Source of the DNA: Macrostomum lignano
Lineage: Eukaryota
DNA: 38,256 bases
Assembly (NCBI GenBank): GCA_002269645.1
Contig: NIVC01004682.1
Coordinates: 1-38,256, forward strand
Reading direction: 5' to 3'
Every line of letters starts with the position of its first letter. Position 1 is the first letter of the stretch. This document shows, piece after piece, positions 7,104-32,600 of this stretch. The notes below the pieces were generated by a model. The model did not search any database. It saw only the letters and a list, made by a program, of their open reading frames with translations, and was not told where the DNA came from. The translations under genes and the position numbers were made by a program.

Positions 7104-7106
7104 CCA

Positions 7107-7147
<41 letters not shown>

Positions 7148-7222
7148 CCAATACAGACAGACAGACAGACAGACAGACACCAAGACAGACAGACAGACAC
7201 CAATACAGACAGACAGACACCA

Positions 7223-7263
<41 letters not shown>

Positions 7264-7266
7264 CCA

Positions 7267-7299
<33 letters not shown>

Positions 7300-7961: not shown

Positions 7962-10608
7962 CTTTCAGTGTAGGATGAAAGTTGTTTGCTCCAGATAGCC
8001 AGCAGCAAAAGCTTGGCCAAAGCTCACATCACATGGTTTGAAAATACCTGAAACAGGTTGAAAGCATTAAAAAACATCATATTTCATATTTGATTGACTT
8101 CCAATCTGAATTTTTCATTGTTTTTTCATTATTTTGAGTCTGAATTAATTGGGCTCATTATTGCCCCCATCTGCAACTGTGCTGCCTTCTGTGTTGCAAA
8201 ATAATACAAACAATACTAGAGCAGTTTAAGGGGATGAAAAAGGCTTGTTTTGTCTGTGCATTGCATTTCAGGCCAGTTTTAGAACCCCCTGTCTTTATTG
8301 TCTATCTGACTGGTAAACAATAAAACTCAATCAATACCACAAACTACAAGCCTAAGCAAAAGGTAAAAAAACTTATTAGCTTTTGTTAATAAATATACAT
8401 TCTACAGTATACATTAGTCAAGGAGAGATGTAAATGGCTGAACTAAACAAAGCCAGGTGCTTTGTACAACACAGTGTGCACAATAAGGAACAAAATTCAA
8501 ATGGAGCACCCACTGAAAGGTATTAAAAACATTTTTCAAATATTTGTCATACTTTCAATTTGAAAGTTTCATAAAAAATCTTATGCATGACCACTGAAGA
8601 ATTACATTTATAAAGCTAGTTTTAAAAAATTGGTACAAAAGTTCTTAAAACATTATAGACATACAAACAGACTAACATTGTAAAATTTATATATAGATTT
8701 TGTATCATTTCAATGGTTTTGCTGTACAATAAAAACAAAAATTGTAAATACTTCTAGCAAAAAATTATTATACATAATCAATACATACTTTGTATTAGAT
8801 TAGTAATAAACATATTTGTTATACTAGGCAGCTTTTCCAGATCTATGATAGCAAACTAACAAAAAATATTTAAATATAGCAAATAATTTTAAAAAGTTAA
8901 ATATACAAAACAAAAGTCATATTTTAGTTTTGAAACTTTTTTGAATATTATTCATAATCTTTAATAAATAAAAACATGTTTCAAATAAATTAAGTGCAAC
9001 AAATTTCATTGATTTTTTATTGTATTTTAGCATTTTTTGTATTGGTACAAGTATTTGTACTTGTACTTTTGTAGAGTCAAGCACTTGATCAAGCTTTTAG
9101 TATATTGACAAAACAAGTTTACTTAAAATATTGAAATAGTCAAACAGTGAAAGTATCAAAATTAAGCATTTAAAATGTTTTTTTAACTTGAATCCCTATG
9201 TCTAAATTATTATTATACATATTCTAACATATTCTATATTGGATAGGCTTATTTATACATTTTAACACATTTAACAAATATATTTAAATAGGCCTTAGTC
9301 TAGGCCTAATTTAAATTATTCACTCATTTTCAACAAATACATTTTAACATCTAGGACTTCTCATATTGTAAGACCAAGATGGCCACATATCAAGATAGCC
9401 ACAATATTGAATCTCTATTACATCTACTCTCTTTTTACCATTAATTAGAAACTTAATAGCTATTATTATATTAATTATTATGTAAAATGTTTAATCAGTC
9501 ATATTCATAAATAGTGAAACAAATAATAGATTTGAAACTAATTACCTATAATACAAAAACTTTAATCTTTTCTATGTTTGTGCCAATTTATTCTCTATCA
9601 TTAGAGCCTACATCTATCTGATCTGTCACTATTAGTTTATCAAGAAACCATTGCTAGTGGTAATGGTATATAAAAATGGGATAAATATCTGGCAGCAATG
9701 TTTTTATTTTGTATTAGGCTATATACTTGCTTTATTTAGTGGATAAATATCTATTAGTCAGGTTACAATAAAATGGAAGCCAAAAGGAATGATTAGGCCT
9801 ATTATATAATATAGTTCTATTATATAGGGTGGCCCATATAATGCGCCTGATTTAAAGTAAAACATTAATAACTTTTTATTATTCACAACCAATGTTGACA
9901 AAATTTTAACACAACATTGCAACAAGTATAGCATTAGGCTATATTTGCAAAATTTATGCACACTAAAGTACACTCACATATAGAAAGCATAGTGAATGCA
10001 GCGCATGCTTGCAGCTTGCTTTTTTGAAATTCAACTTAGGACCTCCTTTTATATGTGTATGAGTGCTTGCTTGCATGTGTAAATTTTGCAAATATAATGC
10101 TATACTAAACATGTGGCAACGTTGTAAAATTTTGTCAGCATTGGTTGCAAATGACAAAAGTTATTAATGTTATTAATCAGGCATGTTATATGGGCTACCC
10201 TACAGTATCTATCTTTTTAAGACTTGAAGATCTATACTTAATATAAAATACTATCACTAAGAAATAAGTGAAATATAAAGACCTAGGCTTATAATTATTG
10301 ATTTAAATATTTAAAGCTATGGTAATCTTGGTGTGGCCATCTTGGTCATGACTCATGTGCCATGACCAAGATATATATATAGCCACCTAACTATATATAG
10401 AAGTCTAATATGTAACATGAACTTGTAATTATAATAAACATATTATTGTTCATTAGGCCTATATTATTGTGACTGTCACTTTTTAGACTGTTGCATTGCC
10501 CTTTTGACTAGGCCTATTGTCTTTTTGATTTGTCATCATTTTGTGATTTTGACCTATAGCCACAGAAATAGCCAAGTAAATATCTGGAAGTGTAGCTTGT
10601 CTAACAAA

Positions 10609-10936
10609 TAGTAGGAAAAAAAGTCAACAAAAAACATAAAAAGTAAACTTTGTTTAATTCTAGCCAAAGTGTTTCGTCATACACAAGACATCGTCAAGGC
10701 AAATTCAATCAACCTAAGATCACACCACCAATATATTTAAGCAAAAATCACTGTATAGTCCAGAGGTAGGTCAAAACAGTCCAGTAGAATTAAGAAAGTG
10801 CCAAGTACACAACAAAGTGAAAAAGAGAAAAAATAATAAATAGGCATGGCTCTGCTCTTGTGTTTGATGAAACACGTTGGCTAGAATTAAACAAAGTTTA
10901 CTCTTTATGTTTTTGTTGACGTTTATTTTCCTACTA
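10609..10936. repeat. Inverted repeat with about 80-bp arms and about 165-bp spacer; MITE-like or paired Penelope-like ends
   Basis: 10609-10688 is the imperfect reverse complement of 10855-10936; termini TAGTAGGAAAA...TTTTCCTACTA. Confidence 0.8.
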
Positions 10937-13900
10937 CAAGTAAATACCTAGTTTGCACTTAAGCATAATATTTTGATTGTGATTTATCTAGGGCCTCAAT
11001 GAGCATTAGGCGATGAGCATTTAGCCATGCATAATTGAAAATAAGTTTAAATCACAACATTTTATATAGACATAAGACAACTATTATAGGCCTAGCTAGG
11101 CCTTGGCTTAATATTAGACCTAGGTCCTAGGCCAGGGCTAGGCAAGGGCTAGGCCTAATAATGGGCAATATTAATAATGGGCAATATTAATAAATATTAA
11201 TTAGATATTAAGCTGCAACTTAAATATAAGTATTTATTGTTTATTAATAATTATTAAATAATTTGTGTATTTTCTAAGTTAAAAGGGTAAATAAGTCCAT
11301 AGTCTCACTCTTAATACACTAGACACCTAGAAATGGAATGGCAACTTGCAAGGCGCCAGCTATTTCTGTCATTCTGATTCCACATTATTTAAGATGCTGC
11401 TTAAGCGGCTCAATATAAAATTTTATTTATGCTAAATTCATATTATTACATTATCAATTAAGAATTTAATTAGGCCCTATATAAATAGACTAAGGGCAGG
11501 CCGACTAAGGTACTTAGTACTAAGGACACAAAGGGCCTTTTCATATTGCTTCTGGTTCCTAAACCAGAACCAATTTGTGAAGTATAACTGTTTGTCTCCA
11601 TAACTTAACTAGAGGGAGATAAATGCTATAAAGTTTTTATTATTGAATGACAATCGCCAGGAAGAAAAAGAAAAATTGTGCTAAGTGAGGTTGTTAAGGC
11701 AGTCAAACATTCAACAGAATTAAATACTTCTACTGCTGTTTTTTTGGAAGATCCGAACCGATTCTGGTTCTGGAATTGGTTATATGAAAAGCCTTAAAGT
11801 GCCGACGATGATTTTTATAGGCCCTAATCGGGACGGACGACTAAAAAGTAGTAGTAGAATTAATTGTCTGAAAAATACACGAAGAGTCAAAATCACGTGC
11901 AAACAACTTAATATAATTTTTATAAATTTTAAATTACTTTACTGCATAAAGCAAGTAGTCAAGTTATACTCTAGGCTATGCTAAAAATGCATAGTATTTT
12001 GTTATAAACAATTTTACTTTTATTGCACAGTTTTAAATAAAAAAATCTGAATAGAATTTGAAATTAAAAAGTTTTCCATGTTGGTCCATACGTCGGTCCA
12101 TGGATATTAATATTGTTGAATATATGTAGTTGGCTTTAATTTGCGTAGACAAAGGAAAACTAGAAAACTTCAATGATCAAATTTGTTTTTTTACTAAACT
12201 CGCAGTTCCTTTAAACTGAGTTTGACCAAACTTGAAGACGATGATGACTGATGGTTACGAGTACAGCATCAAAAAGGGGCCACGGAGAACATGGCGGATG
12301 TTCAGACTCGGTCCTGGAAAATGCAGCTGATTGAATGTCTGAATGAGATGCTGTAGATTTCCATCAAACGGGTTCGAATAGATAAGATAATAAATATTCG
12401 CAGGATGGTTCTACATGTTGGACAAAAATTTGCTGATTAATTGCCATTCTGGCGATTCTGAGGCAAGCACGCGGATACATGCACTCATGCACACGCTCAC
12501 ACATGGCGTACATTGGCCCTGACTTTCTACTCACACTCTTTCTCCTACACACTATATCTGTGACATGGTAACTTGATCTGATGGGTGTGAATCGAACAAG
12601 CCTCTAAAAATGTACTTTGGCTGAACTCCAGACCCCAAAACCCTTTACACCGTGCGACCTTTCAGACGGACGCTTGACGACGGAACTTTATTTATAAATT
12701 TGGAACAAGCTTGCAAAAAATGCCTCTTTTAGATATCAAGCACCGAAAGCGGCGCTAAATCATAACTAACTAAATGCAAATAGTTTAAGTGAGAAGCAAA
12801 ACCGTCAAATCTGATGTTTTCATAAAAAAATATGTTATTGATCCCAAAAGAATTAGTGTAGGCTAAGAAGAAAGCTTGCACACACTACTTGCATACGCAT
12901 GCATCAGAAAATTTTATTTATCAAAAAACCGCGTTGAGTCTAGCCACTAGGTACTAGGTACAGGATCTATAGCCTTTGAAAATTACTCGTATGGGGAGAA
13001 GTGGCTTTAGATTAAAGCCTGGGTGTCCAATTTGAAGCGCATGCTTGTCTATTAGTTTCAAAATGAGGTAGAGATGTCCATCGTGATGTCCATATGGTCT
13101 TATAATCTACTTTTATGTATAGGATTTCAACCTTGATTGTTTGTGGTCTAGCTTAGTGTGAAGAAAAACAATTTGTATTCAACGCAACAGCAGAAAGCTC
13201 TGTCTATGGAGTCTGCGGTCTTTAAAAGCTAGCCCGCAATACGCTCATATACTCAGATTTGGTAGGCAGCATCGCAAAACCAGCCCGGTCTACAATATAG
13301 ACGAAACTAGGGGTACCATTCGATTAATGTCCCCCTAGTGTCTGTGATGATAGATACAGCTTTCTGAGCTTACAGCTGCGCAGTGGTCTGGGTCTGTTCA
13401 TGACTCGAAGATTTTCCGCAACAGTGTTTTGTAAGCTTCTATTCAAATGCACCAGACGTAACACGTACATGTATATGCATACCGATTTTAAGACCATAGA
13501 CAGCAAATACCCAGTCTCGATTACAGATTCTACATGTATATTATCTGAGATGTGCCATTCCAGCCGCCTGGCGCGAAAACCCCGGGGTTAAGACCATAAA
13601 CTAAAGCTTCTGCTTCTCTCAAGCATTAGCAGTACCCCTAGTGTCTGTGGCCCAATCACCGGCGGGGTTTTCGGGGCCTCAGTGGCAGCCTATAAATACA
13701 TTAGCGAAAGATGGAGGGACACATCTAGATTATATAGAATCTGCCGTCTGGACTACCTACGACCCTTTACGCATTTTTTAAGTGAGCCTGCTACTAGATT
13801 TAAGAGTAGTGCCATAGCCCATAGGCATTTATTCATTCAATGCTGAGTGGCCCGTCTTGTTGCTATGCATACTCATTGTTCAAACCAGCTGGAGCGCTAG

Positions 13901-14295: not shown

Positions 14296-15328
14296 ATGGA
14301 TTCTATCGAAATCAAGCATATCATCTGTGTTCTGATTCTTTCAATCCAGTACTTTGAAATCCACGCCGGGTCGTCCGAAAGAAAGTGGAGCTCAAGCCGC
14401 GACAGCTTCTTTGACTATGAGGCCTTGAGGTCGCTGAAAGTTTCTTCTGAAATCCAGTGCACTGCCGCTGCCAGAAGTGACTCCGCTGTGCAGCTGGTGG
14501 CGTTCAACGCCAGCTCCGGCCTGTGCGCTCACTTCAGGTGTCGCCTGGACCTGAGACACTGCAGGAAGTGCCGCAATGCGAACAAGGGAGCTCAGCGAGT
14601 GTGGGTGAGTCCTGTGTCAGCAGAATTTGCATTAACATAGTCTGAATTGGCACTTTTCCAAAAAATCTTTTTACATTGCAGACAGCCGGCAGTGACTGCT
14701 GCATCACCGTGCAGCACAGGGTGTCCGGCTCAGTGGACTTTTACCGCGGCTGGACTCAGTACCAGAGCGAGTTCGGCGAGGGACCCGACGGAAACTACTG
14801 GATCGGTAGCTTTGAACTTAAAAAAAATATAAATTTACATGCTACATTACATGCCTTTGTTTAGCTAGTATTCCGCTTCGTGTTAATCTTCACATTTCCA
14901 TCTCAGGCCTGAACTCTCTCCACGATCTCACTGCTTCTGGTCCTCGGAAGCTGAGGATTCTGATGAAGGCGTGGAACGACTCTGAGCACTGGGCTGAGTA
15001 CTCCAGCTTCTCCGTGGGTCCCGAGTCTGACAACTACCGGCTGAGCGTGTCCGGCTTCTCCGGCAGCGCCGGCATCGGCGACTCGCTGGCCAGAAGCAAC
15101 GACTTCCAGTTCACCACCAAGGACGCCGACCACGACGTTCACTCCGACAACTGCGGCTCGCGCTACTTCGGAGCCTGGTGGTTCGCTGACTGCCACAACA
15201 CGCACCCGAATGGACAGTACCGCGATTTCTCGTCAGCCATTGATGGCCCGAGGGCCCAGGGTATAATCTGGAAGTCGCCGTTCGGTCCGTACTACTCGCT
15301 AAAAGAGATCGAAATGCTTGTTCTCTAA
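14296..15328 (+). CDS. Secreted PAN/Apple-like + fibrinogen C-terminal domain protein, copy A (284 aa)
   Basis: Exons 14296-14604, 14682-14805, 14907-15328 (855 nt, in frame, GT-AG). Hydrophobic leader; FReD motifs [51 protein letters not shown]. Confidence 0.9.
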
Positions 15329-17132
15329 AGAAACAGATCTGCTGTTGCTTGTTCTATGAGACTATGATAAACAATGAATCGGTAATGGTTAAATAAGGCT
15401 ATTACTATTTGAATGGAACTTGACTAAATTTGGTAGTAAGTGTTTTATTGTTAGTTGGCTTCAAAATTATAGAGTAAGAAGATTATTTTCCTTCCCTCTA
15501 ACACACTCGTATAGCCTAAATTCTGAAGGCTTCAACTTGATGAGAGGCTTGCCGGGCCTGAAAGCATACAGATCAATCACATAATACTCTGGCCTCCCAC
15601 TCCTGTCAGATGATCAGTGTTTCGGAGGTAGACTATTAATGTATTGATTTTCCTTGCATTGCGTGATTTAATGTACGTGCTTTATTCAGTTCGCTATGTA
15701 CGCTGATTTAGCGCAGGCCAATCTCACCCGACCCCCTCCACGCTGGCTGATTCTGACTGACTGCAATAAATATATATGTATCATCGAGAGGGCTTATTAG
15801 CCCTGTGTACGGTTTACGTTTTAATATCGTCTCGCTTGAGCCTCAGCTCCAAATAGTTTTGGCGGACCATCGGCCTTTTCATTTCTACAGTACAATCCAT
15901 CTCAAGGTAGCATAGATGCGGCGAGCATCTGGGTTTTATAGCTCAGAGAGGACAGCGAGAGACAAACAGGGAGAATCTGTAAAGGTATAAATAAGCTAAT
16001 TTGGAGATTAGGCTAATCCACAAGCCTGTGCGAACTGGCTCACCAAACCAGCTGTCTCGAAATCGCGTTTCCGACTAGAAAGAGGCTCAGCACTTACCTG
16101 CCAACTAGTCCTTAATCGATCAAAGTATTGACCCCGACAGCATAAATGGAGCGCGCTTAAAACCAACAGCAATCACAGGTCTTCTGTACACCTCTATATC
16201 CTCGTCCGTTCATTAAACTCGAACCAATGCAGCCTGCACATTGCCGAATCGAACCCATGGAACATCAGCGCGACATAACGCTACTCTGCCTCTTAGCTGC
16301 AGGGCTGTCCCGGAAGGGACACAACGGGAAGGCGCGGGGGGTACTCAGCACAGGCCGTGGAACAAATGCGAGCCTTCATCCAAGAATTCCAGCGGCTGTT
16401 AAAGACTCTACACTACCCCTGCGTTCATGTCACTAATGAGCTTTGGGATCTCTTTGGGAAAATTGTAGTTTTTTCTTGACATTGCCGCACTAAGTTCATC
16501 ATGCATCCCAATGTTTCAACTACGAAGTATGATGGATGCTGAGAAAGAGCACATGGAAGCTCTTGAAAGTACCTCGTTGTATTTTTGAGGTAATTCAACA
16601 GCATCGCGTGCAGCCACTCTGCTTGTGCCGTTAAAAATTTATGCGCAATTGCCAATTAGCCACTGCCGCAGAATTTCGGTGCTTCTGTGGCAGTAAAAAA
16701 CTGAGTGAGTTTCAAATGACAGTTTCTTTAGCTTTTCTATACCCAAAGTCTACCTTAATGGGCTCTAGCTAAAGCCTCCTAACCCTGCATCTTCCAGCAG
16801 CATCACCTCCGTCAAAAAAGACCACGCATCTGTCTGCTTGGGGCGGGAAAGTTATAAAACTAATGAGGCCCTGCGAGGAAGCCACCCTGACACATGGGAA
16901 GCTTAATCGGAACCTGCTATAAGCCTACTACGTAAGCAAAGAGTTTTCATAAAACGTAAGTTGTGCCAAGACAAAGGCTTTTCATTCATTTGGTGAAGTA
17001 GCTGAGGCATCATAATCCCAGCCCCGATACTGAGTAACGTTAGTGCACTGTTACTTAATACTTACGGCTTTCTGATTCTTATTCTGCATGCCACTGTCTC
17101 GCCAAAATTCAGACAAAGATACAATATCTCCA

Positions 17133-18153
17133 ATGAACTACTTGACTTGCTTACTGCTGCTGGCTGCAGAAACTTCGCTGACATTCAGCGATGCTTTGTT
17201 GACAAGCTGGTGGTCAAGCCGTGACCGCCTCTCTAACTATGAGTCACTAAGGTCGGTCACGGCTCAGTCCAAGATCCAATGTACTGGTACTGCAAGCCAC
17301 GACTCTGCAGTGCAGCTGGTGGCATTCAACTCCAGCTCTCGCCAGTGCACTCACTACCGATGCCTGAGCAGCTTCAGGAAGTGCCGCGATGTAAACAGTG
17401 GGGCTGAAATAGTGTGGCTGAATCGAAATGTAAGTCTTCTCACTGTGCCCTCGTATGGAGTCAAATTTTAATTTTGACTTTTATAGTTTTTCCCCTTTCA
17501 GACCATCAGCAGTGACTGCTGGACCACCGTGCAGCACAGGGTGTCCGGCTCAGTGGACTTTTACCGCGGCTGGACTCAGTACCAGAGCGAGTTCGGCGAG
17601 GGACCCGACGGAAACTACTGGATAGGTAACCATTTGTATGGTTCTATAAGATTTTTATTGGCATTGCTTCTTTGTCTGCAATTTTTAGCTAAGTGACATC
17701 ATAATGATTTTATTTATCTTTCTCAATGTAGGTCTAAACACTCTTCACGATCTCACTGCTTCTGGTCCTCGGAAGCTGAGGATTCTGATGAAGGCCTGGA
17801 ACGACTCTGAGCACTGGGCTGAGTACTCCAGCTTCTCCGTGGGTCCCGAATCTGACAACTACCGGCTGAGCGTGTCCGGCTTCTCCGGCAGCGCCGGCAT
17901 CGGCGACTCGCTGGCCAGAAGCAACGACTTCCAGTTCACCACCAAGGACGCCGACCACGACGTTCACTCCGACAACTGCGGCTCGCGCTACTTCGGAGCC
18001 TGGTGGTTCGCTGACTGCCACAACACGCACCCGAACGGACAGTACCGCGATTTCTCGTCAGCCATTGGTGGCCCGCGCGCTCAAGGTGTGATCTGGAAGT
18101 CGCCGTTCGGTCCGTACTACTCGCTAAAAGAGATCGAAATGCTCATCCTTTGA
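17133..18153 (+). CDS. Secreted PAN/Apple-like + fibrinogen C-terminal domain protein, copy B (280 aa)
   Basis: Exons 17133-17429, 17502-17625, 17732-18153 (843 nt, in frame); leader [19 protein letters not shown]; an alternative ATG lies at 17088. Confidence 0.88.
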
Positions 18154-18853
18154 GGCAACAAAGTTTGCAAAAGTTAATTCTGTCGATGTTAATCTTTATC
18201 CAAGAGAGACTTTATGGACTTATAAATATTCGTGTCAAGTTTTTTTCACTTACAGTTTACTTATTGGATTATATTTTGTAGACGTCATCGTCAAACTCAG
18301 AGCAGAGCACGTAATCAGGTTTTACACAGGTCTGTCGATGAGGTTTATCCAGTACTACGCACAATGAGTGCCTGATTTTCAGTTTCTCCTTTCTGACTGG
18401 GTTTTGTCATTTGCTTGCTCGACTGTTTCTTGGAAATCCTCCAGTGGGATTACGCACGTAGCTACGCGATCTTCAACCAAAACTAGAATCTATCCTTTTG
18501 TTTATTGCATATTGCCGGTAAATAAACTGGCTTTTTCCTCTCCATCGTTACACGCAATTACAAACTCGACAAGTTTAGCTGTCCAACACCTGTTAAGACG
18601 ATAAAGTCAAGTCTCAGACTCTTGAATGTTCATTCATTTGCATTCAGACATGCTGCTCAAGTAGAAAATTCTCGCAAATTCGTTACCGATTTGACGTGAC
18701 ACACTTGAACGTGGGGTTTTATATTATTTGAGTTGCATTTCGAAGGTTCAGTTGTGTTGGTAGTTCAATGCACAGTAGTCTCAGTCAAATACTCAGTCAA
18801 GCAGATCTTGTGTGTCTGGATAACAATGTATAAAAATATAGACTAGGGGAGTA

Positions 18854-19543
18854 GAATGCATGAGGGGGCTTCTGGGACAAAATTTTTCACGTCCTCCATA
18901 ATCCCATTAAATCCATCCATATTATCCCCGACAGAATCAGAAAAAAGGGGGGTCGCACTTGCTCCCCCTTTCGAGGATTATGTTCGAAGTTCGAAGTTCG
19001 AAAACTTCGAACATAATCCTAAATCCATCCATATTATCCCTGACAGAATCAGAAAAAAACGGGGGGGGGGTCGCACTCGCTCACAAAACGTCCTCCATAA
19101 TCCCATTAAATCCATCCATATTGTTCCCGACAGAATCAGAGCACAACAGGTGTCCTACTTGCTCCGAAAACTTCGAACATAATCCCATTAAATCCATCCA
19201 TATTATCCCTGAATCAGAGCATAACAGGTGTCCTACTCGCTCACAAAACGTCATCTATAATCCTCCTAACTAATCCTCCTTCCTCCATGACAGAATCAGA
19301 GCATAACAGGTGTCCTACATAATCCACTGACATCCACCCATAGCATCTTCGAAACAATCAGAAAATAATCTGCATTCTTCTCCCCACATTCAATCCGCAA
19401 CGTGCTACCACATCCCTAAAACTTTAAATCCCCTAACCCAGGGTCCTTACCCTTTGAAAAAAAATTTCATAATAATATGGATGGATTTAATGGGATTATG
19501 GAGGACGTGAAAAATTTTGTCCCAGAAGCCCCCTCATGCATTC
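18854..19543. mobile_element. Non-autonomous DNA transposon (MITE/foldback-like) with perfect long TIRs and internal ~80-bp subrepeats
   Basis: 18850-18925 is the exact reverse complement of 19472-19547. Simplest reading is a TA TSD (18852-53, 19544-45) in an AGTACT site. No transposase ORF. Confidence 0.85.
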
Positions 19544-21141
19544 TACTTAGAGGCTAGGGCTTGGCATTATTGAGCAGTTGCAGGGTTCATTGAAAGCTCG
19601 CTGAGCTGGACGTCCTCTGTTGCACGGTGTTACAACAGTCTGCCATCCATTTTCTCGAGGCTGCTTGAGCAACAAGCCAACAACAAGCAAACCAAAATAC
19701 ATCAGACAGCTGTTTTGAGATCTTAAAAGGGAACATAATTAACGAAAGACAGTGTTACAAGGCGCGACTTTGAGCCGAGGCGTGAACATATGTAGCGTGG
19801 ACAACAGATTCTGGGGCGCCAGGGTCTCAGAGAAACGCCGAGTACACGTGTAGTTCTAAGAGTTTTAAAGGAATTTTCATACTGATCGTTGCATTTAATA
19901 CGAGGCCGGGGCTGTCGTGCGGTTCACTCACTCATGTGGGCCAAGCCCTAAAAGCACAGAGAGTGTGCATGCTTGATGATTAGTAAGTCAAGGTTGCTGT
20001 ACAGCCTGTGTGAGCGCATATGAGTGCCGTGCCTGCGTGCAGTATTGGCGCGCTTGTGCGAGCTCAGGTGAGCGGAATGGCCAGAACTGCCTATGGGTAA
20101 AATTGTCGCTGAAAGCGCTGTGCCAGCGTGTTCACATTATTATTGTTTCATTATGCTATTACTAATGCTGAAGTCACTTCATTCTTAACCGTGAAATAAT
20201 TTAAATTTAATCTTCTGTCATATAGAAACAGAGACTGATCGGTGAGCAAAAATCTGTGAGCAGCTTGCTTCCATTTTCCGCATGTCAATACTGCATGAAA
20301 TATTGCATGCATAATGAGAAAGCCGAGGAGAGAGAGAAGAGGGACCGGGGTGGGGTGTACCACAGAGGCCTCGCTAGTGGCCACGTTACCATGGTTTTGT
20401 CAAACAGCCATGAGACTCCGCTCTGAGCGGCCGTTAGCAGCTGGGCTACATGACTCACTCCTCCGGATATGAGACAGTGCAGTGTTTAAGCAGGAGAGAC
20501 GGCTTCCAACAGCTCCGATCGATCCCACTCCGTAGCGCCGAACCTCCGTTTCTCTATCTCGCCCCCCCCCCCCTGTTGCCCTAGTGCATCGTTACAAGAG
20601 CTGTAAACTTCCTGGTTGCAAGACTGCACCAACCCATCAACTTCTACAGCAAAAAGCCTTGGAAAAACCGAATCCGCCATTCCACGTTAACATTAGCCTT
20701 AACTCAAAGCTATTACCAACGCATCGCATGGTTCTGTTGTGGACTGTCTTGTAGATCCGGTCTAATGGTGTTGTATTGACACAGAATTCAAACCTAAAAT
20801 AGACACATGTCATGTTTCCTATAGCATAAAATCCCTCCTCATATAGTATGGGTGAAATTGTATTTTTGTTGACTAAAAATCAAACTGAATCCTGTCGCTA
20901 GTGAAACTGAGCTGAAAGAATTGATGCAGACAGTTGGACTTGGAGGCTGAACAAATAAAGAAATCGCTAGTTAAGGGATAAATTAAGACAGGAAAAACGC
21001 CAGATCACCTCGACCCTACCTGACTTCGAAATCATCAGAACCTTTCCGTTGCGGAGCCACTGGGCTGAGACACAGCTGCAGACCGACTATTTTACATAAA
21101 TCGATACAGCTCGAAAAATCGAAGACCAATAAATTATCTCT

Positions 21142-22151
21142 ATGTGCTCGACAAACGGATTTAAATGGATGATCATGCTGTTCGCAGCTCTAAATCCCCG
21201 CGTGGCCCGAGTTGTCTCAGCTGAGAGAACTTGGCGGCTGAGTCGAGACGGCCTTGCCGAATATGAGGCTGCTTCTTCGTTTTGGGCACGGAGCGACATC
21301 AGCTGCATGGCGACTGCGGACTCGGACCCCGCTGTGCAGCTGGTGGCGTTCAACGCCAGCTCCGGCCTGTGCGCTCACTTCAGGTGTCGCCTGGGCCTGA
21401 GACACTGCAGGAAGGGCCGCAATGTGAACAAAGGAGATCATCAAGTGTGGGTGAGTCCTGTGTTTAGCAGCTTTTGCATCCCCATAGTCTGAATTGGTAC
21501 TTTTGCAAAAACTTTTTAGATTGCAGACAGCCGGCAGTGACTGCTGGACCACCGTGCAGCACAGGGTGTCCGGCTCAGTGGACTTTTACCGCAACTGGAC
21601 TCAGTACCAGAGCGAGTTCGGCGAGGGACCCGACGGAAACTACTGGATCGGTGGGGTTGAATGCTGTTTAATATTCTGTAATTAAATTTGGATAATTGGA
21701 ACTATGTTCAACTTTTCAACTTCCCAGGCCTGAACACTCTTCACAAGCTCACTTTATCTGGTCCTCGAAACTGGTCATTTTAATGACCGCCTGGAACGAC
21801 TCTGAGCACTGGGCTGAGTACTCCAGCTTCTCCGTGGGTCCCGAGTCCGACAACTACCGGCTGAGCGTGTCCGGCTTCTCCGGCAGCGCCGGCATCGGCG
21901 ACTCGCTGGCCAGAAGCAACGACTTCCAGTTCACCACCAAGGACGCTGATAATGACGTTCAGGCTACCTACAATTGCGCCGAGAGGTTCGTCAGTGCCTG
22001 GTGGTTCTCCAACTGTTTTGACACCAACCCGAACGGAGAGTACAAGGACTCCGCTTCAGCCATTGGTGGTGCACCTAATCTGGGAATTCTTTGGAAATAT
22101 CCCTTCGACAGAGAATACTCATTGAAAAAGTTTGAAATGCTGATCTTTTAG
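21142..22151 (+). pseudogene. PAN-like + fibrinogen C-terminal domain gene, copy C, with a 1-nt deletion early in exon 3 (pseudogene or consensus error)
   Basis: Exons 21142-21450, 21527-21650, 21728-22151. CGAAACTG at 21766-73 lacks one A relative to the R-K-L of the paralogs, giving TAA at 21781-83; the downstream frame is otherwise intact. Confidence 0.75.
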
Positions 22152-22737
22152 ATACTGTGGGTGATTTTGGAAAATGTATCAATGAGGACCAGTGATTATC
22201 ATCTATTTAATTACTTATTTACTTTTTTGAGCGAAATGATGGCTCTTGAGCGAAGAAATAACATCAGAAATATGCTTACATTCTTAAATGTAATCTTTAA
22301 ATTGGATGTAAACCTGTTTTCTGTCTGCACTCTCAATCTATCTATTATAAATAAAATCTGAAGTTGTAAAACGTGAGTTTAAAAAAATCTTTTAAACTTG
22401 TAACTGTTTCTTTGATAAGAATGAAATTTTTGTTAAGATTTTTTGTTCTCTCAAGACGTTTGAAAGTGCACACTTAAATAAAGTGGTAAGATCACATAAA
22501 AGGTTGACTTTTGCTGATCTACTATAAGAATCTAAAGTGGATAATATCTTATCTTATCTATCTATCTTCTTGAAGTTTTTTTAAGGTTTCAGAGATAATG
22601 CGCGTTCATCCTGCAGTCCCTTGAAACAAAAGTTGAAGTTCATATCCATCTTTCCCCCAAAATAATGACCAGCAACTATTTAACATATTTAACTTAAGCT
22701 TCGGAAGTGCTCTGTGAGGAAGCCCAAAAGTATGTTG

Positions 22738-23046
22738 ATGTGGATTGCTGTGGATTTCTGTGGATTGCTGTGGATTTCTGTGAATTGCTGTGGATTTCTG
22801 TGAATTGCTGTGGATTTCTGTAGATTGCTGTGGATTTCTGTGGATTACTTTGGATTGCTGTGGATTGCTGCGATAGCTGTGGATTTTTGTGGATTTCTGT
22901 GGATTGCTGTGGATTGCTGTGGATTTCTTTGGATTTCTTTGGATTGCTGTGGATTGCTGTGGATTGCTGTAGATTGCTGTAGATTGCTGTAGATTGCTGT
23001 GGATTGCTGTGGATTGCTGTGGATTGCTGTGGATTGCTGTAGATTG
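22738..23046. repeat. 10-bp satellite (TGTGGATTGC / TGTGGATTTC), about 30 copies
   Basis: Directly visible; source of the QSTAIHSNPQ repeat ORFs. Confidence 0.96.
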
Positions 23047-24314
23047 AATAATAGAGCAGAAATTTGCTAGCAACTGAGGCGAAAAAGTGTTTGCTTCGAG
23101 CACTGAACGAGCCAGGTTGAGAAGCTGCAAACGTTACTAAAAATAGCGATTGCTGGCGGATGCCTTGCCGGAACCGGGAACCAATGGACAGCAGATACAA
23201 AGCGAAACAAAAGCCGAAGTTGCTGGCTTCGCTTCCTTGCAGCTTTTGTTCTGATCCATGAAAGAAATTTGAATCACCCTGGGAAGCGAAAGAAAGCAGT
23301 CGTTGACGCTCGCTGAATTGTGCTAAGATACTCCTTCAATAGTCAAAACTGCCTGCTTAGCAGTAAGTCGAAGCAAGAAGTAATAGATGTAGGGAATATC
23401 TCCAAAGCTCCTTTCTGCTTTGTAACTCACATTGACGTGTTAGACAAACTGAGTTTGGTGTGCAGCAGTCTTGTGCGAGGTACACCTGTGCACGTAAATG
23501 CTCCTGAAGCATTACGGAGCCTCTCCAGTGCAAAAATCGCCACCTTTTTTAACCCGCTGCCTCTAATGCATTTCCTTCTTTCCAACTCTTTAACAACGGC
23601 GCAAAATAAATCCTGTTATCAAATTCTGCAGGGAAGTGTTCCCTTTTTAACAATTTTTTAACACGGAGGAAAATTTGTTATTTTCTTAGACAACTCAAAC
23701 GCATCTGGAGTGAGACGTCAATCAATCATTTCGTTATAACAATTGTGAACTTCTTCCCCTTAGGCTCTTTGCTGTTATAGAACGGGGGCCAGTCACCCTA
23801 CAGGGCTCAACACGCCTAGGAGTGGGTCACAATGGCATGGGTTTTTCAAGTCTCATGCCTTGCAGGGGGCCCTTATTTGTTGCCAGGTGGTCCATTTTTC
23901 AGTAATAGCTTCTAGATTTCATGTTTTTACTTAGTTGTCTTAGATGTCAATCAAATTTTTGATACATACACATGCAGACTCTGAGTTTTCAACGCTACAA
24001 AGACAAACTGGTTTTAATATCTTCAAATTCAAGTTATGAGTCGGCGAATAATCAGAATGTAGCTAAAAATGCGTAAATAAGAAACCGAATTACTTATACT
24101 AATTGATACACGTATCCAGTCTTAGGTTAAGACAAATCGAAGGATTCTAGTGATGCGTTTGACCGTAAACAAGTTGTTTGCAAAGTGTTTCAGTCGTATA
24201 TTGATCGAATATCACAAATTAAGTTATATCTTTCTTTCTGATAGAATTTCCTGGTCACTAGGGCAGTGTTTACTTAACAGAGTCAATTGATCTCGATGCT
24301 CAAAAGGCCCAGTT

Positions 24315-25335
24315 TTAAAGAATTAGCATTTCAAATTCTTTCAGTGAGTAGTAGGAGCCGAACGGATACCGCCAGATGACGCCTTCAACAAATGGGCCTC
24401 CAATGGCCGCACTGAAATCTCGGTATTGTCCATTGGGGAATGAATCAGAGCAATCTGAGAACCACCAGGCTCCGAAAAACTTGTCCGCACAGTTTTCGTG
24501 ATAGGTGTCGTGATCAGCGGCTCTCGTCGAGAATTGGCGGCCATTGTTGCGAGACATCGAGTTGCCGACGCCGGCGCTGCCGGAGAAGCCGGACACGCTC
24601 AGCCGGTAGTTGTCCGACTCGGGACCCACGGAGAAGCTGGAGTACTCAGCCCAGTGCTCAGAGTCGTTCCACGCCTTCATCAGGATCCTCAGCTTCCGAG
24701 GACCAGAAGCAGTGAGAGCGTGGAGAGAGTTCAGGCCTGGGAAGATGCGGACGTCATGGCGGTGTTTGTCATTGAAGTCCGAGTTGGAAAAGAAAGCGAA
24801 TGGAGCAGATCTGGGATGCACTCACCGATCCAGTAGTTTCCGTCGGGTCCCTCGCCGAACTCGCTCTGGTACTGAGTCCAGTTGCGGTAAAAGTCCACTG
24901 AGCCGGACACCCTGTGCTGCACGGTGGTCCAGCAGTCACTGCCGGCTGTCTGCAAAAGAAAACAAGTGGGTTGGTTTAGCAAACATAATACTCGAATTTT
25001 AGGAGTGGATTTTTGTCACTCACCCACACTCGCTGAGCTCCCTTGTTCGCATCACGGCACTTCCTGCAGTGGCTCAGGCCCAGGCGACACCTGAAGTGAG
25101 CGCACAGGCCGGAGCTGGCGTTGAACGCCACCAGCTGCACAGCGGGGTCACCGGTGGCAGCGACAGTGCACTCGATTTTGGACTGAGCTGAGAGCGACTT
25201 CGCGGGCTCGTAGTCGAAGAGTCTCCCCGGACTGAATCTCCATTTTGTTATTCCAGCACTGGCCTGGCACCCGATAAGCTGGACTGCAGCGAGTGTCAGG
25301 AACCACACGGCTGCCAGAGCGCTTACCGGGCGCAT
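24315..25335 (-). CDS. Secreted PAN/Apple-like + fibrinogen C-terminal domain protein, copy D (285 aa)
   Basis: Exons 25335-25024, 24949-24826, 24736-24315 (858 nt, in frame); leader [27 protein letters not shown]; same intron positions and phases as A-C. Confidence 0.9.
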
Positions 25336-26192: not shown

Positions 26193-26684
26193 TCAGTAGA
26201 GCTCTCGAATTCTCTGCACCGACTTCTGCCAGTTGTCAAACCACCTGGTCTCGAGGGTGTCAGCCTCCGCAGCAGCTCGTCGGATCTCCTCCATTACTTC
26301 GTGGAAGAATTCCTTAAACGCGGCGTAGAACTCCCTGCGAGCCTTGTCCGTCTCGTTGTGCGCCATGGTGGTCTTGGCCGTCACGGTCAGGGTGGCGCAG
26401 CGCAGAGTCTTGGGCGGCTGCTGCTCAGGCGGCTGGAACTCGTTGAGCGGCAGGCCGGACCAGTTGGCTTTGCCCCGCGGGATCAGCTGATCCTTGTTGG
26501 GGTCGTGCAGTGGCTCGCCGGCCATCTGCTTGCGCAGCAGGTCGGCAGTGGGCAGCAGGTCGGGTGGGACGCGGCCGCGTTCAACTTCGTCGGCTGTGAG
26601 GAGGCTGTCTAGCTTGATGAAGAGCAGCTCGGACAGCTGGCTGACCTGGCTGGCAAAGAAGTCGGCCTCGCGGACTACCAGCTC
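26193..26684 (-). CDS. CCDC180: CCDC180 terminal coding exon
   Basis: Acceptor ccgcAG at 26685; 164 codons ending RIRELY-TGA. Confidence 0.85.
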   Translation of the reverse strand, partial: ELVVREADFFASQVSQLSELLFIKLDSLLTADEVERGRVPPDLLPTADLLRKQMAGEPLHDPNKDQLIPRGKANWSGLPLNEFQPPEQQPPKTLRCATLTVTAKTTMAHNETDKARREFYAAFKEFFHEVMEEIRRAAAEADTLETRWFDNWQKSVQRIRELY

Positions 26685-29600
26685 CTGCGGTGGCGTGGTG
26701 GAGTGCGGAAATGCGGCGGCAGTTGCTCTTATGAGCGCTATCATTGCATTGAGGGACAGGCATTCTCAGGCTGGGTTCTCAGCAAGTGACAAGCCTTAAA
26801 TTAGCACGAAATCTGAGTAATCTATTGGGTTGACACTTCCTGTCTTTCTGTCTGATTCCGCATTGTTAACAAATTCTTTTAGATTGGCTGGAAAGAGTCC
26901 TGTGTTTGTCAAGATACTCGTCACTAGTATGTTTTGCCTACTAAAAGTATTGTTGTGCCCTGAAGAATCGCCCTCACCGTTACTTGTTATGAATCGCTCC
27001 CCACCGTTACTTATTCCTTCAATGTTAGCCTTGATTCTTTACAGTTATATCTATGGCCTCAATTCCTGCTATGCTTACATCTTATTTCCTAAGTTAAAAT
27101 ACAACTGTTATCTGCCAAGCTCGATACACAACACTGACGTCGCCATCCTCGTTGGGCGAACTACCGCTATGCAAGCCCGACCGTGCCCAGGTCTGGCTAA
27201 CTGCCTTTGAAGCGCTTGCTAGAGCCAAAGGCTGGTCCGATACTACTGAGAGGAAAACCATCGCTGACAACTTTCTTGCTTGCTGTGGACTGACTACATT
27301 GGAAAAACTGCAAAGCCTAATATCACCGCGCGCTGTAACAGAGTTGTCGTTTACTGACATCAAAGCAGCACTCACCTCCTATCTGCGTCCGAAGGAGAAG
27401 CTTACTATCGCAGAACGCGCACGTTTTTTTACGATGCAGAAACTACCTGTTGAGCCAGTCACTGACTTTGTCATCAGATTGCGGCATGCGGCAGCCGATT
27501 GCAAATTTGACTCACTCAAGACGCATCAAAGTTCTTTGGAAGAATTGATACGAATGGCACTGATCGCCGGACTTCGTGACGGCCGGAAGCAACAACGTGT
27601 GCTTGAGACATTGCAACTCACTGAGCTCTCCGTTTCTGAGATTGTAGACTGCATTCGAAACATGACCCAAGTTGACAAGTTCGTCTTAAAACAGATGGAA
27701 ACGACAGGAGGCCCCTCGGTGCCACCCGCGCAGACTGCTGCCACAGTTCAATCCGATGACTCGACCCTTCATTATACTCAGTCACAGCGACCTGACAGAG
27801 GCGGCACTTGCCGGAAAATCACGGCTTGTCGATATTGTGACAAGCCGCATCCTGAAGGAAAATGCCCAGCTTTTGGCAAGATCTGTTCTAAGTGCGGAAA
27901 AAAAGAACCACTTTAGTGCTGTCTGCAAATCAGCGGCCTCTCGACCCGTACATCACACCACAGCTGATGAAGAAGACACAAGACTTGATCCGCAACCTAC
28001 AACAACAACAACAACAACAGAGTACGCTGTCAGTTCGCAAAAGCAGCGTCAGATGGCGCGCTTCGAAGCTTGGGCGCGAACAAAGGCCGCACCGCCGGCA
28101 GAGTCCGGGGCGCCGGCGTCAGCCAGCAGACAGTCGACGTAGCGCCGAGTCCTCGCCTGTCTCCGCCGGTAGGGTGCCTGCAACGTAAGTAGCAGCACCT
28201 CCTGCACCGGCTTCGGACAGTAGGCCTCGGCGCGGATGATGTGGCCTGCCAGCTGGAGTCGCCGACGGCGCAGCAGATCGCTAGGACGGGCCAGGCCGGC
28301 GCGATGATAGAGCGCCGTGTTGGTGACTCGCTCGTTGCCGATCTTGAAGGCGGCGCGCAGCAGGCCAGCGTGCGCCGCGTCGACTTGAGCCTCGAGCGAG
28401 TCTGTCAGCGTCCAGGTCTCGGCGTTGTATAACAGGACGGTCTCGATCACCGACTGGAACAGCGCCGCCCTCTGGCGGTCCGGTAGGGCCTCGGACTGCA
28501 GGACTGACCTTATAGAACGAAAGGCAGCCCAGGCAAGTCCTCGGCGACGCCGCAGATCCTCGCGGACGTCGGGAACCAGACCGCCGAGGTAGAAGAACTG
28601 CTGACATCTTGGAAGCTCACTCGCCTGTCCGTCAGCGCCTCGGCAGAAGATTGCAGCCTCGGTGTCGTCCGGCACGCATAGCACGACGGTCTTCTGCGTG
28701 TTGACCACCAGGCCGACTCTCGCCGCAACGGCAACCAACCTATCCAGCTGTCGTTGGGCGCCCTCGACGGTCGAGGACAGCAGGGCGAGGTCATCGGCGT
28801 AGCCAAGCACGCTGAGCCGTCTCTCCGGTTGGCGTCGACCCACGCGTCGCCGCAGCAGGAAGCCGCAGCAGGAAGCATGGAGCAACCTACGACCGTGCTC
28901 CATCTAACCGACCCCCTACACTCAATCGAAGCCACGACCGAAGCAGTGCGCATCAATGACAAAAGGCTAGAGATGCAAGTTGATACGGGTGCATCCGTCT
29001 CCGTGTTATAGAGCGCGCAGTGGACCAAGTTGGGCCAGCCACCACTTCTACGCTGCAACCGACGCCTAGAGGCTTTTGACGGGCATGTGATGCGGTCACT
29101 CGGCAAGATGGCTACGACTGTAGAGCTACGAGGGCGTCTACACTCGGCAGAATTCATTGTGGTGACTTCCGCTAAACCGTATGGCTTGCTGGGTCGGGAC
29201 CTCCTCGATTCTGATGGTCTCTTCCACACAGAGTCACCAGCCAGCAACACAGCTGCGGAGCACCTGCCCACCATCAGAGGTGTCAAGGCCTGAATGGAGT
29301 TGAAAGATGGTGCTCGACCACAATTCTGCCGTGCGCGCCCAGTTCCCTTGGCCCTGGAAGACCAGATCAACGCTGAACTATACCGTCTTCACCGACTAGG
29401 TGTCATCGAACCAATAGAAGGCCCAGTCAGTAATTCTTCCCACGTGGTATGGGTGAAAAAAAGGATGGATCACTGCGGATGTGCGCAGACTATAGTGTGC
29501 ATGTCAACTCAAAGATCAAATCAGATTCGCATCCGATCCCACACGTGGAAACCATGTTCTCGAAACTAAAGAATGCCAAGACATTTGCCACCGTCGACCT

Positions 29601-32600
29601 GCGTTCCGCATACTGGCAGATTGAGCTAGACGAAGCGGCGAGAGATCTGTCAGTTATCAATACGTCCGCGGGCTCTATCGAGTAAATCGATAATGGGCAT
29701 GAAAAACGCCTCTTTTATCTTTCAAAGAACAATAGAGTCCATTCTAGGGGACATAAAGGATTTACTGATCTACCAGGACGACATTCTTGTCCACGCACCA
29801 GACAAAACAACCCTAGAAAAGCGTCTTACTGCCGTCCGGACGCGGCTCACTGAAAAGCGCGTGACCATCAACGAGTCAAATTGCATTAGCTATTGCGATT
29901 CCGCCTCATTCTTAGGCTTTCGGATCTCTGCTGCAGGCATAGAGCCCAATGATCGCGTGGTCGAGAAAATTCGTCATGTGTGTGCACCTGCAAACAAATC
30001 GGAGCTCGCCCACTTCCTCGGGATAGTCATTTTTTGGGCGGCTGATCCCGAACTTTGCGGGCGAGACTGCACCTCTTAACAGACTGAGAAAGGCCGGCAT
30101 ACCTTTTGTGTGGTCGGATGAATGCTCCAGGGCATTCGAGAGTCTCAAGATAGAGATTGCGTCAGCGCCTGTCTTCCAACCATACAGTCTGACGAAAGAG
30201 CTCACGCTCACCACCGATGCGTCCAAGGGAGCGCTCGCCGCCGTGGCAACGCAGGATGGCCATCCCGTCATATACGTGTCACGCAGCATGTCTTCCGCTG
30301 AGGCCAACTATTAAAACATAGAGAGCGAAGCTCTGGCTATAGTTTGGGCGACTGCACGTCTAAAACATTACTTCCACGGCCGACCCTTCACCATCCGTAC
30401 CGACCATCAACCACTTCTGCGTTTGTTTGGGTCTGGCACCGGCATTCCGCTAAATGCATCCGCACGGATCGGCCGTTGGGCGATGTACCTGATGCAGTTC
30501 GACTACCAAATACAGAATGTACGTGGCAGCAGCAATCCGCACGTTGACGCTCTCTCAAGACTGCGTTTTAAGGGCAGCACGGTTGATGACAAGACAACTT
30601 TTGAAGCAATTAACTCAGTGGCTTTTGAATCGCCCGTTATTGACGCCAGAAGGATTGCCGCTGAAATAGACGTCGACGGCTTTGCACAGAAGATATTCAA
30701 TCGGGTGCGACAAGGAAACTGGATGAATTGCAGCCAGGCAGAAGCACAATTTAAGAAGGTTGCCGAAAAATTGACGCTGGAGAATGGCCTGCTCTACATG
30801 CAGAGGCGCGTATACATACCTCCTCGTTTACGACAGACCGCCTTCAACACGATTCAAAGCACACATTCCGGAGTGCAGGCTTCCTACAATTTGCTATCTG
30901 CGACCTGTTGGTGGCCTGAGATGCAGCATGATGTCGCTCAATATGTGCAGCGCTGCCCCGGGTGCAACCAACTGCGCCCACACGCTGGGCGTGACAGAGA
31001 CCACTGGCCCCCGTCAACATACCCATTCCAACGGATTCATATGGATTGGGCATTCGTAAAGGACGCTGGAAACACTATAATAGTTGTGGACGCGTTCTTA
31101 GGCTGGATAGAGGCCTTCCCTAGTCGCGACCGGACAACTGACTCCGTCATTCGGTGCCTCACAACAGTATTCACGCGCTTTGGGGTTCCAGAGGTTGTTG
31201 TATCAGACAACGCGCCCGAGTTTACCCGAGCAAACTGGAATCACCGGCATACTACCCGCAAGCGAACGGGGCAGCTGAAAGAGCTGTGCAAACGGTCAAG
31301 TCGGCACTGCGGGCCTGGTCGGAAAGATTAACGCATATGAAATTCAGCCACTTCCTGCAAAAGGTGCTCCTGCATCATCGGAATTCTGCTTCGTCCCGAG
31401 GAGGCTGCCCCGCCGAAATAATTTTTGGATGACGACTCCGTGTCCCGGTTGTGTCGCACTTTGAACAGGGTGACAGCGTCATCTACACGCCCAATAGTTC
31501 TGCCGTTGGCAACCCAGTGACTTTCGTCATGACGGCTGGCCGCAATACGGCTTGGATCCTGACCGAGGACAACCTTCGCTTCACCAGCACAAACCAGATC
31601 GCCCCACTAGCCTCTCAATCGCCAGGAGTTGAGTCAGAAGATGAGGAGGACCAACACGCTCCGGTCACCAGGGAGGAGCCTGGCACTGCTGAGGACAAAA
31701 GCCCCGAGCCTGGAGAGGATACGCTCCCGCGAAGAGGAAGCAGGAACCGGACCGCGCCTGATCGCTTTGTGTCATGAACTATTTTCCGATTTTCGAAAAA
31801 CTTTAATACTGCAACAACATAAGCTCCACCAAGAGGGGACATGTTGTGCCCTGAAGAATCGCCCTCACCGTTACTTGTTATGAATCGCTCCCCCATCGTT
31901 ACTTATTCCTTCAATGTTAGCCTTGATTCTTTACAGTTATACGAGCATCTATGACCTCAATTCCCCACCAAAGCAGCTAAAAGCCCCAGCTTTCCTTTTC
32001 TTTCTTTAAGACCTGCTATGCTTACATCTTATTTCCTAAGTTAAAATACAACTGTTATCTGCAAAGCTCGATACACAACAAGTATGATAGTAGGAGTCGT
32101 TTTTAAATAACTGGTAAATAATTTGCCGGAATAAGGGTCTGAAATTCAATACTTTTATAGCTCGTAGCTCATAGACAGAGTATGTAAGCCCCTACATTAC
32201 GAGTGCATTTCCAGTGCGAACAAACTATCGTTACCATGAGAGACCCAGGTAAAAGGACTTGCGCCAAATACATGCTTGTTCGGCACCAGGTAGCTTTAAC
32301 TATCTAGCTCTCAGTTAGTGACCTTTCCTTTAGTTAGGCCACGGAACAGACTCTCACAGGACTAAACAGATCATAGACGCACCTGCTTGTCGGTCTTCAG
32401 TGCGGCTAGGGCGGCCAGAAGCTCCTCGTGGCGCTGCTGCTCGGCGCGGCAGACAGCCTCCAGACGGTGCAGACGCTCCGGATGGCCAAGTGCCGGCGAC
32501 AGCGTCTCCTCGTGTTTGCGCCGTCGTTGCTCCAGCTCCGTCAGTGCTGACGCCGCCTCGGCGGACAGCCTGTCGAGGCCGGCGCGCACCGATTGGACGC

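Follow-up and report, generated by a model that had tools for sequence, protein, structure and literature searches.

What kind of proteins are encoded by the cluster of related genes at positions 14296-25335 of contig NIVC01004682.1 of the flatworm Macrostomum lignano (assembly GCA_002269645.1), and what might they do? We analysed a window of 38,256 nucleotides (positions 1 to 38,256 of the contig, forward strand), in which a tblastn search with one copy finds exactly four related genes: A, B and C on the forward strand, and D on the reverse strand. An earlier reading of the same DNA from its letters alone (hereafter, the original prediction) had proposed that these genes form a lineage-specific recognition family. 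We consider it likely that the cluster comprises four tandem paralogs, three intact and one frame-broken, of a small, secreted, lectin-type family of fibrinogen-related domain (FReD) proteins of M. lignano.

The number of copies, their strands and their positions agree with the original prediction. The search with copy D covered the whole window and found no fifth copy, and a repeat finder links the exons of A, B and C with each other as direct repeats, and with those of D as inverted repeats. Gene models were built by hand from the sequence and checked by translation (Table 1). All introns are GT-AG and 72-106 nt long, with intron 1 in phase 0 (GTGTGG/gtgagt at the exon 1 donor of gene A) and intron 2 in phase 1. 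The open frames of A, B and D are 284, 280 and 285 amino acids long, respectively; the copies had been described as four compact paralogs, but the frame of C is broken. Similarly, the gene structure had been called identical in all copies. This is true of the three exons, the splice sites and the intron phases, but not of every exon boundary: the exon 1 donor of B (...IVWLNRN/gtaagt) is shifted downstream by 12 nt as compared with A, C and D, which adds four codons, and exon 3 of C is 424 rather than 422 nt long. In B, translation from an alternative upstream ATG at 17088 would lengthen the protein by 15 polar residues. The N-termini are hydrophobic and end in AXA-like sequences (IHA/G, VSA/E and ASA/G). 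Read from the sequence as signal peptides, they are 25-28 amino acids long and are followed by a module of 77 amino acids. We infer that the proteins are secreted.

The part of the proteins that follows this front module is a FReD. The Pfam profile Fibrinogen_C (PF00147) matches A, B and D with scores of 149-153 bits (cut-off 22; E = 1e-43 to 1e-44). The match spans only profile positions ~40-218 of 221, and positions 1 to ~39, which correspond to the canonical A subdomain, are unmatched in all three proteins. Alignments to solved structures begin at a DCW motif (residue 109 of D), which pairs with GGW of the ficolin domain (about residue 44). Hence, the A subdomain is not recognisable, since both types of alignment start only past it. 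In an alignment of the proteins, the cysteine of the canonical CDM motif, which forms the C...CDM disulfide of FReDs, is absent. By sequence, the best solved relatives are M- and L-ficolin (phmmer E = 1.9e-36, ~38-40% identity). The AlphaFold model of D, with a mean predicted local distance difference test (pLDDT) score of 74, superposes on the recognition domains of L- and M-ficolin, angiopoietin and FIBCD1 in a Foldseek search of the PDB. For L- and M-ficolin, the E value is between 4e-18 and about 5e-18, with a root-mean-square deviation of 2.5 Å over ~181 columns and a target-normalised template modelling (TM) score of 0.74-0.76, and the superposed part of the model corresponds to the B and P subdomains. 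The proteins belong to the FReD superfamily: they have its profile, its B/P fold, its Ca2+ loop and its cysteine pair, and they have no recognisable A subdomain. The original prediction described a signal peptide, a module and a FReD, with no collagen, coiled-coil or immunoglobulin stalk. No Pfam match to any of these stalk domains was found (for Collagen, none at E <= 1), and there are no G-X-Y repeats in the signal peptide and the 77-amino-acid module. The stalk-less organisation is therefore upheld, but the FReD is incomplete at its N-terminus.

What might these proteins bind? The Ca2+ loop (D-x-D-x-D) reads KDADHD or KDADND in A, B and C, and is followed by NC...WWF..C. The P subdomain keeps the Cys-Cys pair that frames the binding pocket, the aromatic GAWWF motif and a C-terminal YYSLK motif. 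Since the Ca2+ loop, the Cys-Cys pair and the GAWWF motif of ficolin-type domains are retained, with ~40% identity to ficolin domains, the proteins are most likely soluble Ca2+-dependent lectins that would bind glycans or acetyl groups through the P subdomain. Residues of the ficolin pocket vary among the paralogs. At the position of M-ficolin Tyr271, the site mutated in PDB entry 2wnp, D has F, A and B have R, C has P, and other paralogs have H, Y or F; after the second cysteine, A and B have H, D has S and C has F. Given this variation, ligands probably differ from one paralog to another. We also infer a role in immune or surface recognition. The original prediction had proposed that the proteins act as monomers, which nothing in our analysis supports: mature A, B and C have odd numbers of cysteines (9, 7 and 7, respectively), and stalk-less FReD proteins such as tachylectin-5, FIBCD1 and MFAP4 commonly oligomerise.

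How widely is this family distributed? A profile of the front module (80 positions, built from exon-1-only rows) was scored against 1.84 billion representative proteins. At E <= 1e-3 there are 17 matches, all from M. lignano and all with a FReD after the module; four of the 17 are distant paralogs (P0058-P0061) whose module is ~30% identical. Copy D is 98% identical to the UniRef protein P0004 of M. lignano, and all of its close matches are from this species. At least 34 M. lignano clusters (90% identity) match at E <= 1e-45, and the front module is present in most of these. The nearest proteins of other animals are ryncolin-like and MFAP4-like, with a match to the FReD only, at 43-45% identity. 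Pfam has no family that describes the module, and a literature search on Macrostomum found no description of the family. Together, these observations support a tandem, lineage-restricted family of small secreted FReD proteins, so far only in M. lignano among the databases searched, as had been predicted. The suggestion that the architecture as a whole is unrecognised holds for the module, for which there is neither a Pfam family nor a paper; the combination of PAN and FReD, however, is not unprecedented, since a snail protein, P0044, carries a true PAN_1 domain and a FReD.

One of the distant paralogs is informative about the age of the module. The N-terminal module of P0061 (PAA77764.1; locus L001, NIVC01000725.1 of GCA_002269645.1) is ~34% identical to that of D. 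Its exon 1 ends at the same place and in the same phase as in the window copies (...QLW, CTGTGG/gtgagt), so the exon 1 unit is old within the family; intron 2 is absent. A partial FReD fragment at 8563-8871 of locus L001, 1.1 kb upstream of P0061, is ~50% identical to P0061 residues 169-250, which suggests that there are decayed tandem copies at this locus too. Many UniRef models of the family in M. lignano (P0010, P0001-P0003 and P0054-P0057) are fusions or chimeras, in which two FReD genes are joined, or a FReD is joined to transposon open reading frames (ORFs).

How have the paralogs diverged? Divergence at synonymous sites (dS) varies more than ten-fold along the genes. It is 0.03-0.19 in the core (exon 2 and the first half of exon 3), 0.22-1.05 in the N-terminal module, from 1.0 to saturated in the P subdomain for all pairs but A-B (0.15), and saturated in the signal peptide. 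Identity between copies is 94-100% in exon 2 and 87-97% over the first 180 nt of exon 3. Introns, including intron 2 between the conserved exons, and flanks have near-random identity for most pairs, the exception being intron 1 of A and C (87%). Gene A is closest to D in exon 1, yet almost identical to B in exon 3. Exon 3 of B is 95-97% identical to that of A; the adjoining intron and 3ʹ flank are unrelated. Within it, a tract of ~290 nt has two differences (~99% identity; 14919-15210 in A and 17744-18035 in B), and is likely to be a product of gene conversion. In a GENECONV-style permutation, shared polymorphic sites cluster in every pair (p <= 0.007; ~2e-4 for A-B). Across 12 close paralogs, column entropy is 0.18 bits in the core, 0.87 bits in the N-terminal module and 0.98 bits in the P subdomain. 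These patterns fit repeated short-tract gene conversion or recombination among paralogs, confined to exons that are still similar. We propose that tandem duplication enlarges the family and that short-tract exchange among paralogs reshapes it; conversion would keep a core of ~100 amino acids near-identical even at silent sites, and the N-terminal module and the binding loops would diverge.

Selection has probably also contributed. The ratio of nonsynonymous to synonymous divergence (dN/dS) is below 1 in the core, 0.1-0.2 in the P subdomain, 0.26-0.84 in the N-terminal module and ~1 in the signal peptide, indicating purifying selection on the core and the P subdomain (dN/dS 0.1-0.5). Purifying selection, and perhaps codon bias, adds to the conservation of the core. 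Positive selection on the P subdomain cannot be claimed, because dS is saturated and dN/dS is 0.1-0.2. GC content at third codon positions (GC3) is 0.76-0.82, as compared with a GC content of ~0.3 in introns. Antisense ORFs of 98-112 amino acids, rich in A, G and V, run through the conserved exon 3 of A, B and D (14903-15205, reverse; 17734-18030, reverse; 24498-24836, forward). They are probably a by-product of the sense-frame GC3 (~0.8) rather than genes.

Copy C stands apart in having a frameshift in exon 3 (Table 1). The residues around the missing nucleotide carry unusual replacements within a core that is otherwise invariant in the family. Because the gap and these replacements occur together in an otherwise invariant stretch, we read copy C as a probable pseudogene; alternatively, the gap may be an indel error of the long-read assembly. 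An alternative acceptor 20 nt downstream (cacaag/CTCAC) would restore the frame. We judge its use unlikely, since the conserved GLNxLHxLT helix would be deleted. The N-terminus of the database protein P0010 is almost exactly that of A, and is joined, with the frame intact, to the C-terminal half of C. It represents either a recombinant paralog elsewhere in the genome or copies that were collapsed in an older assembly.

What is the front module? It is ~77 amino acids long, is encoded wholly by exon 1, and occupies the place of the canonical FReD A subdomain. Its conserved positions, numbered by the 79-amino-acid exon 1 module of D used in alignments, are W7, L14, Y17, C31, F46, C53, K67, C68 and R69; the module also carries an N-glycosylation sequon (N-[AS]-S) and ends in ...VW. 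In the AlphaFold prediction, a beta-alpha-beta-beta core (pLDDT 72-90) precedes a cysteine-rich CRKCR loop that is poorly predicted; in a model of the module only (mean pLDDT 70), three strands are predicted. The original prediction called the module PAN-like. There is no support for this at the sequence level: the window modules have no match to the PAN families of Pfam (PF00024, PF14295, PF08276 and PF08277) at E <= 1, 14 modules including those of distant paralogs have no PAN or other meaningful Pfam match at E <= 10, and the module profile returns only noise from PDB sequences. However, PAN/apple domains (Sarcocystis SML-2 and Toxoplasma MIC4) account for five of the six closest PDB neighbours of the module-only model, although the matches are weak (Foldseek probability 0.6-0.96, TM ~0.46 over 48-56 columns, E = 0.2-0.5). 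An hhalign comparison places ECT...AVQLVAF...GLCAHF of the module on the PAN core C...C.sF.F...G.C.L in the expected register. This match is marginal (P = 0.024 over 27 columns), and the comparison is weak because the PAN profile holds only three PAN or PAN-like sequences; a search for further members with the snail PAN_1 domain as query found no candidates. C31 and C53 are in PAN register for one core cysteine pair, and the second PAN pair is absent. Hence, "PAN-like" is a plausible label that is suggested by the models.

The CRKCR motif (residues 90-94 of D, ~25054-25068, reverse strand) is nearly invariant across the family, including in paralogs that are ~30% identical. As pure speculation, the front module could be a cleavable pro-piece, since CRKCR fits the minimal R-x-x-R convertase pattern.

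An alternative explanation for the front module is that it is a strongly remodelled and extended A subdomain, and that the proteins are divergent single-domain FReDs with an N-terminal extension. The module lies exactly where the A subdomain would be, and MAFFT places its cysteines and strands against the A subdomain of canonical FReDs. Helix-strand-strand is A-subdomain topology too. At the exon 1 end, a greedy hhalign alignment pairs ...QRVW with the ...V(Y)CDM strand at a posterior of ~0.6-0.7, with a low posterior further into the module, and the snail FReD of P0044 has KRVWCDMDTGDGGW where the module has AQRVWTAGSDCW. In contrast, hhalign with default settings finds no match between the module and an A-subdomain profile (one column). 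Some Foldseek alignments of the full model (~240 columns) do place the module on the A subdomain, but at a root-mean-square deviation above 8 Å, and the top 50 neighbours of the module-only model include PAN/apple domains and no FReD. Furthermore, the module is roughly double the length of an A subdomain, with an additional strand at its N-terminus, and has no CDM cysteine. We therefore regard a remodelled A subdomain as doubtful for the module as a whole. For the beta-alpha-beta-beta core itself, we put the chance that it is PAN/apple-like at slightly better than even, and think an A-like core rather unlikely. A remnant of the A subdomain may survive as the last strand encoded by exon 1.

Could the cluster instead be an assembly artefact, in which haplotypes were collapsed or duplicated, or consist of dead pseudogenes? 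The genome of M. lignano is highly duplicated and has been assembled from long reads, copy C has a frameshift, and several UniRef models of the family are chimeric or fused. However, introns, flanks, signal peptides and P subdomains are too different for haplotypes or assembly duplicates, as the original prediction had argued from introns and ends. The frames of A, B and D are cleanly open and their splice sites are canonical; dN/dS stays below 1 in both the core and the P subdomain; and a near-identical protein (P0004, 98% to D) was annotated independently. We reject assembly duplication on the evidence of introns, flanks and dS, and consider an artefact or a dead cluster extremely improbable. 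A more serious alternative, which we nonetheless think unlikely, is that the proteins are not immune lectins and have another extracellular role: organisation of mucus or glycocalyx, matrix or adhesion, or reproduction, as seminal-fluid or egg-coat proteins. Such roles also yield fast-evolving, lineage-specific secreted families, and this family is lineage-specific and tandemly expanded with fast-changing ends; moreover, angiopoietin-like, tenascin and MFAP4-type FReDs score nearly as high as ficolins. On the other hand, the top matches in both sequence and structure are ficolin recognition domains, the Ca2+ loop and the pocket disulfide are retained, and the small stalk-less invertebrate FReDs studied so far are mostly lectins. 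Our preferred reading, a lineage-restricted family of secreted lectins, has several points against it. Some FReD proteins, such as angiopoietins and tenascins, are not lectins. The Ca2+ loop of D is RAADHD, with the first Asp replaced by Ala, as compared with RDADHD in the 98%-identical P0004. One of the four copies has a broken frame. Secretion is read solely from hydrophobic N-termini and AXA-like cleavage motifs, and the family may seem restricted to M. lignano because the proteomes of other macrostomids are poorly sampled. The conservation of silent sites in the core could partly reflect codon bias rather than conversion alone. Lastly, a dN/dS of 0.1-0.2 in the P subdomain gives no sign of positive selection for ligand diversity.

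How does the family compare with known systems? Human M-ficolin (FCN1) and L-ficolin (FCN2) have in common with it the Ca2+ loop, the Cys-Cys pair and the GAWW[FY] motif. Ficolins differ in having a collagen-like stalk and an A subdomain, and the residues at M-ficolin Tyr271 and at the His after the second cysteine vary among the M. lignano paralogs. The proteins are not ficolins, because they have no collagen stalk. Tachylectin-5A and -5B, ixoderins, shrimp PmFREP, and ryncolin-like and MFAP4-like proteins are likewise small and secreted, with a short cysteine-containing N-terminal segment and one FReD; the tachylectin-5 structure 1jc9 matches by sequence at E = 1.5e-22. These stalk-less lectins keep the A subdomain with its C...CDM disulfide, and have no counterpart of the CRKCR module. 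By analogy, the M. lignano proteins may work most like tachylectin-5-type stalk-less lectins.

The dynamics of the family resemble those of the fibrinogen-related proteins (FREPs) of the snail Biomphalaria, which are likewise encoded by clustered multigene families, are mosaics formed by conversion or recombination, and have a recognition-type module upstream of the FReD. FREPs carry one or two immunoglobulin superfamily (IgSF) domains and an interceding region upstream of a complete FReD, and somatic diversification has been reported for them. The M. lignano proteins have no Ig-type Pfam match, and the model of their module is alpha/beta, with no Ig sandwich. They are not FREPs, because they have no IgSF domain. 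A more specific proposal, which we regard as quite improbable, is that they are a flatworm counterpart of FREPs in which exon-limited conversion keeps the FReD framework uniform across dozens of paralogs, the P pocket varies, and a new N-terminal module replaces the A subdomain and serves either as a second carbohydrate site of PAN/apple type or as a pro-domain released at CRKCR.

Two further systems bear on the module. The "ficolin-1-B-like" protein P0044 of Pomacea canaliculata, a lophotrochozoan, combines PAN_1, EB modules and a C-terminal FReD, and its KRVWCDM strand resembles ...QRVW of the M. lignano proteins. It is 498 amino acids long, with a bona fide PAN_1 domain (46 bits) and a full FReD (profile positions 3-220), whereas the M. 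lignano proteins have no PAN match and a FReD that starts at profile position ~40. The PAN/apple lectins of apicomplexans (SML-2 of Sarcocystis muris and MIC4 of Toxoplasma) are the best structural neighbours of the module, with a helix cysteine and a strand cysteine in PAN register. They differ in that there is no similarity at the sequence level, the second core disulfide is absent from the M. lignano module, and only three of about five strands are predicted in it.

The window also contains repeats and parts of one other gene (Table 1). The long terminal repeat (LTR) retrotransposon is located in a would-be intron of the DUF4456 gene. On the opposite strand, a fragment of a reverse transcriptase (28049-28903) resembles a second element that is nested or rearranged. 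Satellites, with units of, for example, 24 nt (94 copies), 52/184 nt, 23 nt, (ACAG)n and 39-40 nt, make up most of the left third of the window and its right end, and an AT-rich stretch (26-32% GC) lies at ~8000-12000. Between C and D, 31 copies of the 10-nt satellite TTGCTGTGGA (22735-23046) give rise to spurious long ORFs on both strands ("STAIHSNPQQ..."). The gap between B and C has a perfect 76-nt inverted repeat pair (18850-18925 and 19472-19547), 546 nt apart, around an 82-nt tandem repeat (19001-19318); this unit looks like a miniature inverted-repeat transposable element or a foldback-type element. Rfam and tRNA scans of the window were empty.

Table 1. Coordinates of the cluster genes and other features, counted from the first nucleotide of the window.
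Feature	Position	Strand	Remarks
Gene A exon 1	14296-14604	+	Signal peptide of ~24 aa (...IHA/GSS); N-terminal module from 14368; ends ...AQRVW
Gene A exon 2	14682-14805	+	Start of FReD B subdomain (...NYWIG); phase-1 donor
Gene A exon 3	14907-15328	+	Remaining B subdomain, P (ligand-binding) subdomain, stop codon
Gene B exon 1	17133-17429	+	Signal peptide and N-terminal module, the most divergent of the four
Gene B exon 2	17502-17625	+	Start of FReD B subdomain
Gene B exon 3	17732-18153	+	B and P subdomains
Gene C exon 1	21142-21450	+	Signal peptide and N-terminal module; CRKC cysteine replaced (CRKG)
Gene C exon 2	21527-21650	+	
Gene C exon 3	21728-22151	+	424 nt; frame differs from other copies
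Gene C frameshift site	21768-21775	+	1-nt gap compared with A, B and D: CGAAA-CTGG versus CGGAAGCTGAGG; in-frame stops follow
Gene D exon 1	25335-25024	-	Signal peptide (...QASA/GIT) and N-terminal module (25254 down to 25024)
Gene D exon 2	24949-24826	-	100% identity to C exon 2, 97% to A exon 2
Gene D exon 3	24736-24315	-	P subdomain the most divergent of the four (dS saturated versus A, B and C)
LTR retrotransposon	26951-32080		~5.1 kb; near-identical terminal repeats at ~26951-27133 and 31842-32080; TG...CA ends
LTR element, gag-like ORF	27152-27916		Element frames fragmented
LTR element, RVT_1 fragment	29693-30079		
LTR element, integrase	30423-31331		
DUF4456-containing (CCDC180-like coiled-coil) gene exons	26193-26744; 32371-32772	-	E = 8.6e-26 for 32371-32772; more ORFs to ~37000
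Satellite arrays	167-2425; 2623-3111; 4252-4637; 5058-6328; 7013-7299; 7314-7466; 37947-38256		

What does this family mean for flatworm biology? Expansions of FReD lectins are a recurring route to diverse innate recognition in invertebrates, and little is known of them in flatworms. Invertebrates often have expanded FReD families with odd N-termini. The M. lignano proteins form a lineage-specific subfamily within a common invertebrate lectin family, in which a private module has replaced or remodelled the A subdomain; the finding is useful for annotation and will not surprise specialists. Should the module prove to be a genuine PAN/apple domain, that fold family would gain a minimal variant with a single disulfide. 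The organisation of the family combines a constant core and variable ends with a private N-terminal module where the A subdomain would be. M. lignano, a free-living flatworm model that is amenable to transgenesis and RNA interference, has its own FReD family. If its members are recognition lectins, they would provide a tractable system for repertoire diversification and would point to targets of surface or mucosal immunity in flatworms.

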